Shown: positions 4,459 through 58,435, counted from the stretch's first letter. The stretch is 62,000 bases of DNA from Octopus vulgaris (GCA_951406725.2 OX597817.1:117882001-117944000); one strand, 5' to 3'. Numbers and translations: made by a program. The notes: generated by a model not told the origin, from the letters alone.

Positions 4459-4499
4459 TATTCAACCGGTTTTCGTCATTGTATGACTTGTCAAGAATA
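4459..4499 (-). ncRNA. Minimal type-I hammerhead-like motif, U3-A8 variant (3' pLTR of PLE-A)
   Basis: Minus strand reads UAUUC-UUGACAA-GUCAU(ACA)AUGAC-GAAA-ACCGG-UU-GAAUA. Stem I is 5 bp, stem II is 5 bp, and AACCGGUU is palindromic. Confidence 0.7.
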
Positions 4500-5133
4500 T
4501 TTATGTTTTAAGAAGTTTTTTTAAAAATTAGAAAGGGGAAAAAAAGAAAATTGCATTGTTTTTTGTAAAAGAATAATGATAAAAATGTACAAAAATTAAA
4601 AAATAAGTTCTCCGATACATTGTGAGTTCGTTGTGTATCTTGAGTTTTTATGGTTGTTTACCAAAAAATTACATTGAGGTGTTAAGATCCAAAGGGATTA
4701 AGAGCATGTGATGTGTTGTGTTGTTAAATTCAGCATGTTGCAGGACAGGAAGTAGTAGTAATTGTGGTCCTGGTTCTTCAGTTCCTGTGTTGTGAGTAAG
4801 GGGAGACAACTCTTTTGAGTTCTTCAATAAAACCCAAAATTATAAAACTATCATTTTAGCTTCATTTGCATTATCTTTTTTATATAATTGCTTGTAAACT
4901 TAACTTTCAGATTTTAACACTTTATTTATATTATTTTCTAATAATATAAATCTGCATAGACAATTGCATTTCAAATTGTCATATCATTTATAATAAAAAT
5001 GATAGTAATAACAACAATAGTAAAAATGATATTTAAAGAATATAAGTTTTAGCTTGAAGTGATGAATGCATGGTATCTTTATATATTTGTGTTAGTCCAT
5101 CCATGAAGAGTGAGGTAGAGAAAGGAAGTTTGA

Positions 5134-6105
5134 TCAACGAGGAGTTTGCATATTAAGTTGTGTTTGGAATTTTTCAATAAAGGGATTCTCCTTGTTAATT
5201 CTCTCCTGTGTGGTGATCCCGTCTTTACATTGGTAGAAGGGGAATATATAGAATTTGGGGTTTAAGTCTTTAGCACATGAGTCTAAGTGGTCACTCAGTG
5301 GAATTTGTCGGTATTCCGGGAGGTTTATTTGTTCTTTATGCACCGTTACTCGTTTACGTAACGGGAGACTCGTTTGTCCAACATAATTATGTTGGCAACC
5401 AGCGCATGTGAGAACGTAGATAAGGTTCTCGGAGGAACAGGAGAAGTTAGTCTTGATTTTAAACTTCGTACCTTGTTTGAAGGTAAATTCAGAGCCTTCA
5501 AGTAGAAAGGGGCAGGTACCACAGTTTGAGCGTGCACATTTTTTTACTGTTGGGGGTGGATGTGGTGTGTGAAGTTTGGCATTTGTCAAGAGTTTTTTTA
5601 AAGATTTGTGTTGCCTTTTGCATTTGAGGATTTTGTGTGTATTTATAATGTTTTTCATTTTTGGGTCTGTTGACAGTAGACTGAGGTTTTGTATGATTGT
5701 GGTGTATGCTTCGATATTTTTGGGGTTGTGGGTGGAAATGTATGGAAGTATTTTGAGGTTGTGTGTGGTGTTAGGTTGGGTGGTTTTCAGTGTAGTGTTG
5801 TCTAGTTCTTTGGCGCGTTTTATTCCATACTCTATAAGGGTGGAGGGATATTGACGTTGTAATAGTGTTTTTTTGAGGTCTTGAAGGCGTATTTCTCGTG
5901 TTTTTGGATCCGAGACAATGGTGCATACCCTTTTAGCTAAATTGAAAGGGATATTTGTCTTGGTGTGTTTTGGGTGGCATGAACTAAAGAGGAGGTATTG
6001 TTGTGAGTCTGTAGGTTTGTGGTAGATGTCTGTTATGATTTGGTTCTTAGATGTTTTTATAATTAGGAGATCAAGGAATGGGAGATGATGTTTGCTTAAT
6101 TCCAT
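5134..6105 (-). CDS. PLE-A RT thumb + Cys linker + GIY-YIG endonuclease
   Basis: Motifs LPFLDL, YHKPTDSQQYL..SCHP, CARSNCGTC, LIYVLTCAGCQHNYVGQT and R...H...I...LSDH (CCHH). Confidence 0.95.
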   Translation of the reverse strand: MELSKHHLPFLDLLIIKTSKNQIITDIYHKPTDSQQYLLFSSCHPKHTKTNIPFNLAKRVCTIVSDPKTREIRLQDLKKTLLQRQYPSTLIEYGIKRAKELDNTTLKTTQPNTTHNLKILPYISTHNPKNIEAYTTIIQNLSLLSTDPKMKNIINTHKILKCKRQHKSLKKLLTNAKLHTPHPPPTVKKCARSNCGTCPFLLEGSEFTFKQGTKFKIKTNFSCSSENLIYVLTCAGCQHNYVGQTSLPLRKRVTVHKEQINLPEYRQIPLSDHLDSCAKDLNPKFYIFPFYQCKDGITTQERINKENPFIEKFQTQLNMQTPR

Positions 6106-6188
6106 AGTGAATTGGATGTTGGGATGTATGTTGTTTAGTATGGTTTTGAATTCCAGGAGTTTTCATAAGGTTCTTTCCATATGATGAA

Positions 6189-7232
6189 TCAATCATCTAA
6201 ATACCTTTTCCAGTTTTCCATTAGGTAGGTGTGGAAAACATGTCCAAATTTCTGGCTTGATATTTCATAGAGTGACAGTTCGAAGTAACCCATTATGAGG
6301 TTCGCAAGGACTGGTGCAGCCTTGGTACCCATCGCAATGCCACATTTTTGACGGTAGTGTGTGTCGTCGAAGAGAAAAAAATTGTTTGTCAGAATGAACT
6401 TAAGAGATTCTGTAATAAAAGACTTGTTAATGCGGTCAGGGAATGTCTCTGGGTGTTTTTCTAGCCAGAAGTCAATTGCCTCTATACCATACTCATGTGG
6501 AATGTTGGTGTAGAGGTTGATGACATCAAAGGATACCAGGAGTGCCTCCTCGTTAACTGTTTTCGGGAGGTGTTTGAGCATGTCCAGATCATCCCTAATG
6601 AAACTTTTGATGTGGGTAAGGAAAGGTTTCAAAAGGATGTCTAGGAAGTTACTCAGGCGGTGTGTTTCACAGGAGGTACCAGCCACGATGGGCCTTAGTT
6701 TTAGGTCCTCCGGTGCTTTGATGTTGATGTGGATGTCAGTGGAGAGTTTGCAGGATTCGGTGATGTATTTGTTTTTATGGATTTTAGGAAGGCCATAAAA
6801 AAGGCTGGGCTTGCATTTGAAAATGGTGATATAATCCCTTTCTTTTTCTGTGAGTCCCTGACCGTGTTGGCGTATGAGTGTGGTGAGGTTTCTGATTGTT
6901 TTTTGCTGTTTGTAGTTGTTAATAACCTCATAGAAAATGTTATTGTTAAGCATGGAGAACACTAGGTGTTTATAAAATTCCGTGTCCATAAGGACCACAG
7001 CACTCCCTTTGTCCGCTTCTTTGATGGTGAGGTTTTTATCCAGTTGTATGTCACGTAGGTTTTCCCATTCTTCCTTACTGAAATTGGATTTTACCTTGGT
7101 TTTGCTTGGGGTAAAGGGGAGACTCTGGATGTGTTTACAGAAATCGTCCAGTGTTTTATTTCTCCCTTTTGGTGGTAGGAAGTTGCTTTTATTTCTGATC
7201 AATGAATCGTCCCCATTGTTGATATCTGTCAA
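6189..7232 (-). CDS. PLE-A reverse transcriptase core
   Basis: Motifs IKEADKGSAVVLMD, FYGLPKIHK, LRPIV, LVSFDVINLYTNIP, YRQKCGIAMGTKAAPVLANL and WKRYLDD. Confidence 0.95.
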   Translation of the reverse strand: MTDINNGDDSLIRNKSNFLPPKGRNKTLDDFCKHIQSLPFTPSKTKVKSNFSKEEWENLRDIQLDKNLTIKEADKGSAVVLMDTEFYKHLVFSMLNNNIFYEVINNYKQQKTIRNLTTLIRQHGQGLTEKERDYITIFKCKPSLFYGLPKIHKNKYITESCKLSTDIHINIKAPEDLKLRPIVAGTSCETHRLSNFLDILLKPFLTHIKSFIRDDLDMLKHLPKTVNEEALLVSFDVINLYTNIPHEYGIEAIDFWLEKHPETFPDRINKSFITESLKFILTNNFFLFDDTHYRQKCGIAMGTKAAPVLANLIMGYFELSLYEISSQKFGHVFHTYLMENWKRYLDD

Positions 7233-7240
7233 AGCTTCTG

Positions 7241-56524: not shown

Positions 56525-56765
56525 GGTAATAATTTTTAACACCAGCATGCCGAAATAGCAGTCGAAACTCTGACTATGAAAACCATATATATATATATGT
56601 ACAAGATAGACCTCTTTCAGTTTTCGTCTGCCAAATCCACACGAAAGGCTTTCGTCCGCCCGAGGCCATAGTAGAAGACGCTTGCCTAGAGTGTCACGCA
56701 GAGGAGTGGACCCGGAACCATGTTTTGGGAAGCAAACTTTTTTCCGCACATCCACGTCTGTGCCT
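56525..56765 (-). mobile_element. tRNA-derived SINE (family of 25868-26236)
   Basis: The minus strand reads CATGGTTCCGGGTCCACTCC..TAGGCAAGCGTCTTCTACTATGGCCTCGGGC...GGATTTGGCAGACGAAAACTGAAAG. Confidence 0.8.
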
Positions 56766-57095
56766 TGAATTATTTAGAAAAACATACCCGTTTGTTTTAC
56801 ACAAATGAAACAATATGCAAGCATATTAGTTACTATATTGAGATATTAATTACACGCATTTCTTACGTGTATAGCACATGCTTCGTAAGTAGCAAAATTA
56901 CGATCATTAAAAGTTAATATTTTACTTATTAAATATACCATTTTTTTACATTTTAACTTCTTAATGAAAATTTCATAATTCTGAAAATATAATTGTAAAC
57001 ATATATATATATATATATATATATATATATATATATGAGAAAAATAAAACAACGGAAAATACGCACGCTTATATAGTTATAGTATAATTTTTATG

Positions 57096-57130
57096 GTATC
57101 GACCGTTTTCGCAATCGCTATTCATGATAC
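57096..57130 (-). ncRNA. Hammerhead-like motif, A3-U8 variant (inverted pLTR of PLE-B)
   Basis: Reverse complement of 58401-58435, identical over the motif. Confidence 0.7.
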
Positions 57131-58400
57131 AATGTTTAATTTATATGAAAATATATTTTTTCTTAAGAAGAAAATGGGTCCATGTTGTTTATAATGAGAT
57201 TCATGAGTGAATGATTTTACAAGTTTTCAAGTAAAGGGAGGTATAAACCAACTGACGCAAAACAATATCTTCTTTTTAACTCATGGCACCCGAAACAGAT
57301 TAAAATAAACATCCCTTTTAACTTAGCAAAAAGGATCTGCACAATAGTGTCTGATGGAACAACTCGGGACCTTCGTCTTCAAGACCTCAAAACAACACTT
57401 ATTGAAAGACAATATCCACCCTCTCTTATTGAGGAGGGAATTAAACGTGCCAAACAATTAGACACAAAAACACTAAGAACAAAAAAACATAGCACCACAC
57501 CTCAAACCGAAACATTACTTTTTATATCAACACACAACCCTAGAAACAGTGAGGCATTCAACACTATTGTGCAAACTCTCACTTTACTAACTATGTATCC
57601 AAAAATGAACGACATCCTGAAAACACACAAACTCATCAACTGCAAAAAACAAGACAAATCGCTAAAGAGACTACTAACAAATGCGAAGCTTTACAAAACA
57701 ACCACGAAACCAACGGTTAAAAAATGTGGACGCTCGAACTGTGGAACCTGCCCCAACCTGCTTGAAAGCTCGGACTTCCTTTTCAAACAAGGACAGAGGT
57801 TAACAATTTAAACTAGGTTCACCTGTGCCTCTGAGAACCTAATTTATGTAATAACCTGCTCGGGTTGCAGTCATGAGTACATTGGACAAACGAGTTTAAT
57901 TTTGAGGAAGAGAATTACTCTGCATAAGGAGCAAATCCGTTTCCCGCAATACAGACAAATCCCTCTTAGTGAACACATAGAAAAATGTGCAGGTAACATC
58001 AAACCAAATTTTACAGCCTTCCCTTTCTACCAGTGCAAAGACACACTCTCTCAACTACAACGCTTAAATAAAGAAACTTTTTTCATTGAAAAATACAAAA
58101 CGCGTCTGGATAAGCACGCATAACCAATTTTTATATGTTTACATATTACATCACTGTACATAAATCCCCTACTAAACAAGGCCTCCCTTTTTTAAAACCT
58201 GTCTCCTTTCTGTACACATATTTTCCCCACCCAAAACCTAAACAGTTATCTCCCTTACAGACAACAATAACAATAATAACAACCAATTTCCTCCCTTTAC
58301 TTGTCAACTTGTAAAATCATTCACTCGTGAATCTCATTATAAACAACATGGATCCATTTTCTTCTTAAGAAAAAATATATTTTCATATAAATTAAACATT

Positions 58401-58435
58401 GTATCATGAATAGCGATTGCGAAAACGGTCGATAC
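58401..58435 (+). ncRNA. Hammerhead-like motif, A3-U8 variant (3' pLTR of PLE-B)
   Basis: GUAUC-AUGAAUA-GC(GAUU)GC-GAAA-ACGG-UC-GAUAC. Stem I is 5 bp, stem II is short, and the cleavage triplet is GUC. Confidence 0.7.

Follow-up and report, generated by a model that had tools for sequence, protein, structure and literature searches.

Penelope-like elements (PLEs) are characterized by pseudo-long terminal repeats (pseudo-LTRs), inverted truncated copies and a bias towards insertion at microsatellites (PMC8557442), and their pseudo-LTRs carry hammerhead ribozymes of a minimal form, for which action as dimers was proposed in 2014 by Cervera & De la Pena (PMC4209133). The same work reported one unpaired nucleotide beside stem II of PLE hammerheads and a U3-A8 variant of the core in the Cercyon elements of Schistosoma, whose roughly 1,300 hits the standard descriptor had overlooked. 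Natural covariation from C3-G8 to U3-A8 had been described in 2011 by Perreault et al., together with the finding that exchanges at positions 3 and 8 can keep activity, an insertion in the GAAA run (U13a), a stem II reduced to 2 bp, mismatched U10.1-U11.1, and a viroid that was still infectious with U4C (PMC3088659). In PAc, a Poseidon element of Anolis carolinensis studied in 2024, the single mutants C3G and G8C lose cleavage, and the double mutant partly regains it (PMC11167929). Here, we analyzed a window of 62,000 nucleotides from Octopus vulgaris (OX597817.1:117882001-117944000; positions are counted from its first letter), in which two elements, PLE-A and PLE-B, carry putative hammerheads with a U3-A8 and an A3-U8 pair, respectively, and two further elements, C and D, carry motifs of the same layout with C3-G8. 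We put the probability at about 0.7 that all four are PLE-type minimal type-I hammerheads, that PLE-A and PLE-B are sister elements of canonical ancestry in which the 3-8 pair was swapped under selection, and that their cleavage would take place in dimers or with the aid of protein.

The window is AT-rich (about 33% G+C), with abundant (TA)n and (CA)n runs. It was searched with a descriptor comprising a stem I of at least 4 bp adjoining the core, a core of N3 [U/C]4 G A N N8 A with Watson-Crick complementarity of positions 3 and 8, a stem II of at least 2 bp, GAAA, a linker of up to 8 nt, U, H and the second strand of stem I. All eight matches belong to C, PLE-A, PLE-B and D, compared with a mean of 0.057 and a maximum of 1 in 300 dinucleotide shuffles of the window, so the motifs are confirmed as real and clearly beyond chance. 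The four layouts listed in the initial annotation of this DNA are thus present at their given places, each core in at least two copies, and all four families fit the minimal type-I architecture of open stem I, hairpin stem II and a stem III made of A15.1-U16.1. Opening positions 3 and 8 to all 16 combinations returned the same four Watson-Crick families only, and a core with non-complementary positions 3 and 8 was not found in the window by the descriptor with 3, 4, 7 and 8 left free. A fully degenerate 7-mer core gave 30 extra scaffolds in the window, none of which (0/30) reads NNGANNA with G5, A6 and A9. This bears out the annotated complementarity of positions 3 and 8 in all four families with G5, A6 and A9 unchanged.

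The consensus core C3 U4 G5 A6 N7 G8 A9...G12 A13 A14 is complete in element C alone. PLE-A departs from it by U3/A8 and an extra nucleotide after A14, PLE-B by A3/U8 and D by C4, and the departures at positions 3 and 8 stay Watson-Crick. A pattern search for CUGANGA does overlook PLE-A and PLE-B, as had been anticipated. Position 17 is A in C and D, U in PLE-A and C in PLE-B. Two elements of the annotated layout need rewording: the short linker is there but corresponds to helix III/loop 3, which is usually palindromic (as in C, CAAUUG, and PLE-A, CCGG inside AACCGGUU; near-palindromic in D, CUCAGAG; not so in PLE-B, ACGG), and the notation GAA(A) hides the extra nucleotide that PLE-A has in this run.

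PLE-A and PLE-B are PLEs with a reverse transcriptase (RT) and a GIY-YIG nuclease, present as broken copies. The coding region of PLE-A (5134..8905, minus strand), delimited by open reading frames (ORFs), Pfam matches and homologues, comprises three ORFs running from 8905 to 5134 for an N-terminal part, the RT, a CxxxxCxxC linker and the GIY-YIG nuclease. The order that marks endonuclease-positive PLEs, a telomerase-like RT followed by a C-terminal GIY-YIG domain, is present according to two weak Pfam matches under the Pfam cut-offs (RVT_1, E 4.7e-5; GIY-YIG, E 7.6e-4) and to homologues with 40-66% identity that bear PF00078, PF26215 and PF01541. For the proteins of the one complete retroelement of the window, the best named relatives occur in Argonauta hians and Octopus bimaculoides, which points to an octopod genome as the most likely source. 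PLE-A is disrupted by an in-frame stop directly after YLDD and by frame changes, one close to the junction of ORF1 and ORF2 and another in the RT beyond YLDD (7180-7300 and 6060-6290, minus strand); the first of these could be either a programmed frameshift, as drawn for some PLEs (PMC8557442), or plain decay.

The downstream pseudo-LTR of PLE-A with its 3' tail (4367..4667, minus strand; repeat families D12, I3 and I4, 96-97% identity) runs up to (TA)n at 4330-4366, and further copies lie at 8939-9194 (minus) and, inverted, at 9256-9599 (plus). The direct copies are 4367-4579 and 8982-9194, and the insertion is flanked by the (TA)n at 4330-4366 and by a second run from 9600 (9600-9670). The downstream copy contains the hammerhead at 4494-4459 (minus strand; model extent 4458..4500), a descriptor match of sequence tattcTTGACAAgtcatacaatgacGAAAaccggTTgaata with the core UUGACAA (U3-A8), stem I UAUUC/GAAUA, stem II GUCAU/AUGAC, GAA+a+A, loop CCGG, U16.1 and U17, and a predicted cleavage site between 4464 and 4463. 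A second motif, in the upstream pseudo-LTR at 9073..9115 (minus strand), has c as the extra nucleotide after A14 (GAAcA). The PLE-A motif thus stands on the sense strand 640 nt past the ORF and also about 170 nt 5' of the ORF1 ATG at 8905. A third copy at 9429-9464 (9423..9465, plus strand; tattcTTGACAAgtcatacaatgacGAAAaccggTTgaata) belongs to the inverted partial pseudo-LTR upstream of PLE-A (inverted repeat I3/I4).

PLE-B is retained as a 5'-truncated coding remnant (57245..58123, plus strand) that spans the C-terminal end of the RT and the GIY-YIG domain, is interrupted by a single in-frame stop (57812-57814), and has 62-64% amino-acid identity to the PLE-A protein. Its hammerhead at 58406-58435 (58400..58436, plus strand; descriptor match gtatcATGAATAgcgattgcGAAAacggTCgatac), on the sense strand 283 nt past the ORF end, has the core AUGAAUA (A3-U8), stem I GUAUC/GAUAC, stem II GC/GC with a GAUU loop, GAAA, loop ACGG, U16.1 and C17; the cleavage site is predicted between 58430 and 58431. 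The descriptor also found gtatcATGAATAgcgattgcGAAAacggTCgatac in the inverted pseudo-LTR at 57125-57096 (57095..57131, minus strand; repeat I8), and the inverted arms, 57027-57241 and 58290-58504, are 93% identical. Comparison of stem I between PLE-A and PLE-B shows that three of the five pairs were altered on both sides. Each motif lies on the sense strand of its pseudo-LTR, next to (TA)n and some 70-95 nt short of the 3' end, and the PLE arrangement of pseudo-LTRs, inverted truncated upstream copy and microsatellite insertion is present in the window. The assignment of these motifs as hammerhead-derived and placed on the sense strand of PLE pseudo-LTRs thus holds in strand and position, as it does in the models described below.

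These motifs resemble the minimal hammerheads of PLEs (PMC4209133) in their type-I form with an open stem I of 3-6 bp and a stem III of A15.1-U16.1 plus a short palindromic loop, and in their location in the sense-strand pseudo-LTRs of RT and GIY-YIG elements that also occur as inverted truncated copies and numerous solo fragments. They differ by their occurrence in an octopod-type clade, the inclusion of A3-U8, and the extra nucleotide after A14 in PLE-A, and their stem II does not reach the 7-8 bp seen in the Schistosoma families. All of the variants listed from PMC3088659 recur here or in the relatives, but that study dealt largely with full-length hammerheads of bacteria, phages and viroids, which have tertiary loop contacts and of which some were assayed, whereas ours are minimal and borne by retrotransposons, with activity predicted from sequence. 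PAc is likewise a PLE with a hammerhead in the pseudo-LTR, and the work on it amounts to the loss-and-rescue experiment that the initial annotation had proposed; the exchanged pair was an engineered G-C and the motif overlaps the ORF start there, whereas the pairs described here are natural U-A and A-U, and the motif lies about 170 nt 5' of ORF1.

Because the descriptor had been fitted post hoc, independent support was sought among relatives fetched via their proteins. These included two loci from Argonauta hians (L001, L003), three from long-read assemblies (L002, L004, L005), 38 more from metagenome contigs, and L162-L166, retrieved with a C-terminal piece from the PLE-B lineage as query; the contigs of L006, L007 and L163 stop short of the motif region. 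The first descriptor, with no bulge after A9, gave zero matches in L001-L005. Once a single unpaired nucleotide next to stem II was permitted, as reported for PLE hammerheads (PMC4209133), a canonical motif was detected in about 25 loci, downstream of the ORF on its sense strand and no more than a few hundred nucleotides away. The hallmark of the clade is GAAA-CCGG-U-H, of which the form (A)C(C)GG is kept in PLE-A and PLE-B, and stem II of the relatives often has 2 bp closed by four nucleotides (L008, GUGUAAAC; L016, GAAUUAUC), as in PLE-B, and is often flanked by U.U. Comparison of the pseudo-LTRs of the window with those of the relatives by BLASTN and MAFFT yielded no alignable non-coding sequence other than short AT-rich runs, so homology was demonstrated through structure models.

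The swaps at positions 3 and 8 recur beyond the window. L162, whose protein is 70% identical to that of PLE-B and 61% to that of PLE-A, reads cccUUGAAAA...GAAAccggUCggg and thus has U-A; L164 and L166 share the core AUGAAUA of PLE-B and thus A-U; and the distant relative L020 reads UUGAGAA, again U-A. Apart from two mismatched variants taken up below, the pair is C-G throughout the remaining relatives. A scan of viral contigs for GAAACCGGU-type motifs by position 8 produced scattered single matches among the matches listed.

Two covariance models were built from motifs outside the window. The first (R1), made from 13 canonical motifs and searched with filters off, has as its top three matches in the window the PLE-A copies (E about 1e-5), with 25.3 bits for the downstream (E 1.5e-5) and the inverted copy and 24.0 bits for the upstream copy, and aligns them with U3, A8 and one insert after A14, the base being c in the 9073-9115 copy. 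The other R1 matches are C (15.5 bits, E 0.025), D (13.6 and 10.3 bits, E 0.11 and 1.3) and PLE-B (12.3 bits for the downstream motif; E 0.29 and 1.2). The second model (R2), made from 20 motifs including variants and with 3-8 written as a pair, recovers PLE-A (30.3 bits, E 2.4e-5, for the downstream copy and 29.0 bits for the upstream copy; the inverted copy is also matched) and PLE-B (27.9 bits, E 9.4e-5, and 25.2 bits for the inverted copy, E 4e-4). Judged by these models, PLE-A and PLE-B are members of this hammerhead lineage and not chance look-alikes. Their recovery by models without window sequences, together with the kept hallmark and the compensated stem I, suggests that they are derived from CUGANGA hammerheads.

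In 27 curated motifs, U4 is kept except in D, positions G5, A6, A9, G12-A14, A15.1 and U16.1 are invariant, and N17 is never G. Permutation of position 8 across them attained the 3-8 complementarity seen here with p = 2.5e-5, or 2.7e-4 without L162. The non-window alignment contains 16 CG, two AU, one UA and one other combination at 3-8, with a covariation score of 0.52 against 0.17 in shuffles (reached by 0/500), and its whole structure beats 500/500 shuffles and all slid controls. In PLE-A and PLE-B, positions 3 and 8 changed jointly, while U4, G5, A6, A9, G12-A14, A15.1 and U16.1 remained fixed, in agreement with the annotated covariation. RNAalifold on the MAFFT alignment recovered the inner 3 bp of stem I only, with compensatory changes, because stem II was misaligned. 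RNAfold and RNAcofold gave a dimer resembling a double hammerhead for PLE-A and canonical relatives and another dimer for PLE-B, predictions too model-dependent to be weighed.

A protein tree from the C-terminal 170 residues unites PLE-A, PLE-B, L162-L166 and two Argonauta elements in a nine-member clade (support 100/96) that includes bearers of C-G, U-A, A-U and A.G. Within it, PLE-A and PLE-B are sisters (100/96) and L162 comes next (90/87), and the motifs of PLE-A and PLE-B are homologous, which contradicts the annotation of the four families as unrelated. A single group of A-U bearers was rejected by the approximately unbiased (AU) test (p = 0.025), although this group was named post hoc, after the tree had been seen. 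Assuming that pseudo-LTRs share the history of their ORFs, the 3-8 pair has switched state several times in the clade; template switching between elements could break this shared history.

We hypothesize that the PLE-A and PLE-B motifs descend from the canonical CUGANGA...GAAA-CCGG-UH hammerhead of the clade, in which C3-G8 would have become U3-A8 in PLE-A and L162 and A3-U8 in PLE-B, L164 and L166, with the rest of the core kept and stem I altered by compensatory substitutions. Such a pattern would be expected if selection keeps the 3-8 pair and hence the active hammerhead fold, and the sequences suggest that in this lineage the pair, and with it the catalytic fold, is indeed under selection. 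The short palindromic helix III/loop 3 would allow two copies to pair, and transcripts spanning tandem or pseudo-LTR-flanked units would be cut after N17. This cut would probably be slow, occurring as a dimer or with the protein of the element, and may trim unit-length PLE RNA.

Several points weigh against this reading. Self-cleavage after N17 is predicted for these motifs from sequence alone, and the annotated use of ribozymes by PLE-A and PLE-B, which implies catalysis, is therefore worded too strongly; minimal PLE hammerheads cleave poorly in vitro (PMC4209133), and cleavage of PAc required the element's protein, while its catalytic mutants were without effect on insertion in vitro (PMC11167929). 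Every copy in the window sits in a broken element, PLE-A has its extra nucleotide in the G12-A15.1 run, and loop 3 of PLE-B (ACGG) is no longer palindromic. Covariation within the window amounts to two data points, PLE-A and PLE-B, with C and D being canonical C-G; the descriptor was shaped after the motifs were known; and the R1 matches that support D independently are weak. The relatives are short metagenome or assembly contigs and possibly dead copies. Among them, L164 and L166 have about 2 bp of continuous stem I, L165 (946-989) reads AUGAUGA, with either an A.G combination or an A inserted after C3, and L025 (1531-1568) reads CUGAAUA with a C.U mismatch; the last two may be dead copies, or else single-step intermediates linking C-G with A-U. 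Rfam hammerhead families had no match at the gathering threshold in the whole window and none among the best 150 of 261 matches at E<=10, which were swamped with microsatellite 'miRNA' matches, and none was among the matches listed at E<=10 for the motif regions alone. Since canonical element C was missed as well, the minimal PLE type evidently falls outside the Rfam models, and this null result is uninformative.

Some of these points would fit a motif that, in the PLE-A/PLE-B lineage, is conserved without being catalytic, an RNA structure bound by the element's protein or pairing two RNAs, in which 3-8 is kept for folding. Such a role agrees with the behavior of the catalytic mutants of PAc, for which no RNA-seq read ends were found at the cut site (PMC11167929), with the low in vitro activity of the minimal form (PMC4209133), with the extra nucleotide of PLE-A and the loop 3 of PLE-B, and with the great success of Naiad PLEs, which are devoid of hammerheads (PMC8557442). 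We nevertheless consider it unlikely, as the invariant positions U4, G5, A6, A9, G12-A14, A15.1-U16.1 and H17 are exactly the catalytic core, none of which a structural role needs, and the 3-8 pair is known solely from the active fold. Decay could be invoked instead, with PLE-A and PLE-B as relics of a canonical hammerhead whose 3/8 complementarity is a coincidence of AT-rich sequence: both pairs would be Watson-Crick by chance with a probability of about 0.08 at this base composition, the copies lie in broken elements, one PLE-A copy differs in its GAAA run, and mismatched variants exist elsewhere (L025, L165). It is improbable, however, that decay would produce the same U-A and A-U cores in elements with 50-70% protein identity (L162, L164, L166) whose flanking untranslated regions are barely alignable, and leave every other core position of PLE-A, PLE-B and those relatives intact, with a compensated stem I and the above permutation result.

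A different register has also to be considered, which assigns C3 to the C preceding the core, treats the U or A that follows as an insertion of 1 nt, leaves position 8 mismatched with C3, and would have PLE-A cut after G17, adjoining the AACCGGUU palindrome. A clear insertion of this kind is found in L001 (CUUGAUGA, compared with CUGAUGA in its sister L003, with an identical stem I), L165 is readable both ways, and RNAcofold pairs the full AACCGGUU palindrome. This register, however, wrecks stem I of PLE-A, PLE-B and L162, turning five, five and three perfect pairs into wobbles or mismatches, places C at 16.1 in PLE-B and L162, and makes the complementarity of the inserted base to N8 an accident in 5/5 cases; hence the original register was kept, as R1 and R2 both choose it, and we regard the shifted one as very improbable. 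For PLE-A, the version with C3, an inserted base and G17 was rejected on the pairing of stem I and on the register chosen by both models.

With selection on a swapped 3-8 pair as the preferred reading, the question of novelty can be addressed. The U3-A8 swap, including its occurrence in PLEs, is already published (PMC3088659, PMC4209133), and the idea is not new. What is new is modest: the A3-U8 form, which recurs in three diverged elements, and the coexistence of C-G, U-A and A-U in a single PLE clade. A natural A3-U8 hammerhead was not found in the literature searched, which did not include Lunse et al. 2017 and Przybilski & Hammann 2007, so an earlier mention is possible. We propose only tentatively, with rather more doubt than confidence, that these are the first natural A3-U8 hammerheads and that they belong to a cephalopod-type PLE clade in which the 3-8 pair switched repeatedly between C-G, U-A and A-U, possibly through A.G and C.U intermediates. 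Overall, the initial annotation held up in essence for PLE-A and PLE-B but overstated the independence of the families, and most of its content had already been published.

Searches fixed on CUGANGA under-count hammerheads in cephalopod-type PLEs, a point made earlier for Schistosoma. Should A3-U8 and U3-A8 hammerheads prove to cleave, they would be natural compensated variants of C3-G8 in one sequence background, and this variant series would help to ask how far the identity of the 3-8 pair counts beyond its pairing, as a ready-made natural loss-and-rescue set. The biological need for the hammerhead cut in PLEs is itself unsettled, and cleavage of these forms would bear on whether it is under selection, which is still debated (PMC8557442, PMC11167929). 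The motifs reveal no new kind of RNA or mechanism.

Element C carries a canonical minimal type-I hammerhead at 51985-52023 (51979..52025, plus strand; descriptor match ccacCTGAAGAttgtcgatcaggacaaGAAAcaattgTAgtgg) with CUGAAGA, stem II UUGUC/GACAA, GAAA, the palindromic loop CAAUUG and UA; the cleavage site is predicted at 52019/52020. The second copy of ccacCTGAAGAttgtcgatcaggacaaGAAAcaattgTAgtgg, also found by the descriptor, lies in the inverted arm at 49763-49725 (49723..49769, minus strand; repeats I1 and I5). The arms, 49628-50382 and 51368-52120, are arranged head to head, about 755 nt long and 99-100% identical, with the motif in each arm about 100 nt from the outer end and beside (TA)n; no ORF of at least 80 amino acids was found between them.

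Element D (52233..52512, minus strand; repeat D14) consists of two units of about 95 nt, each between (TA)n runs, with a 140-nt period and 96% identity. The descriptor places its motifs at 52484-52451 and 52344-52311 (both minus strand; ctgtCCGACGAacgggaacgtGAAActcagagTAacag), which have the core CCGACGA (U4C, C3-G8), stem I CUGU/ACAG, stem II ACG/CGU with a GGAA loop, GAAA, loop CUCAGAG and UA; a cleavage site is predicted at 52455/52454 on the minus strand. The units resemble either ends with extreme 5' truncation or a tandem of two copies, so the annotation of D as a terminal repeat was not upheld. The only two carriers of U4C are local duplicates of one dead fragment, so the change is not readable as a family trait and may be a mutation private to that fragment. 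Runs of (TA)n occupy 52115-52300, 52372-52440 and 52500-52540; the contact of PLE-A, the right-hand end of C and the D units with (TA)n is consistent with the microsatellite insertion bias of PLEs. D, and partly C, also resemble animal non-LTR retrozymes (PMC7229834; bioRxiv 10.64898/2026.07.22.740005) as short ORF-less units with type-I hammerheads lying side by side, and retrozyme units have been argued to derive from PLE pseudo-LTRs (bioRxiv 10.64898/2026.07.22.740005). Retrozyme monomers, each with an active type-I hammerhead, form tandem arrays and are expressed as circular RNA. There are just two copies of D, with the core U4C, and the 140-nt period is largely (TA)n; D fits two extreme 5'-truncated PLE ends equally well.

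A solitary degenerate motif of the same clade lies at 1494..1535 (plus strand; R2 22.8 bits, E 0.0017; R1 17.9 bits), with GAAA, loop CUGG and UU, and is readable either as UUGAAAA (U3-A8, the core of L162) or as CUGUUGA (A6U); no PLE ORF or coding remnant was found near it. An RT-like fragment at 36584-37078 (minus strand) has 26% identity to the PLE-A RT over 181 residues and presumably belongs to another retroelement.

Among the relatives, a conserved short block, AATCGGA/AATCGGT, stands about 30-60 nt past the hammerhead and before the (TA)n end in L002, L005, L009, L021 and L026; it was not found in the tails of PLE-A and D. In L165 (1089-1493) and L166 (from about 973), the first ORF of the next unit (MPPxK..., compared with MPPKNK... 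in PLE-A) begins about 100-150 nt past the hammerhead, so these contigs hold tandem units in which the motif lies just 5' of ORF1, as in PLE-A. The pseudo-LTRs of L001 from Argonauta hians (3248-3547 and 8831-9130) are 100% identical, which suggests a recent insertion, and the 1-nt U insertion in the core of L001 is present despite this identity.

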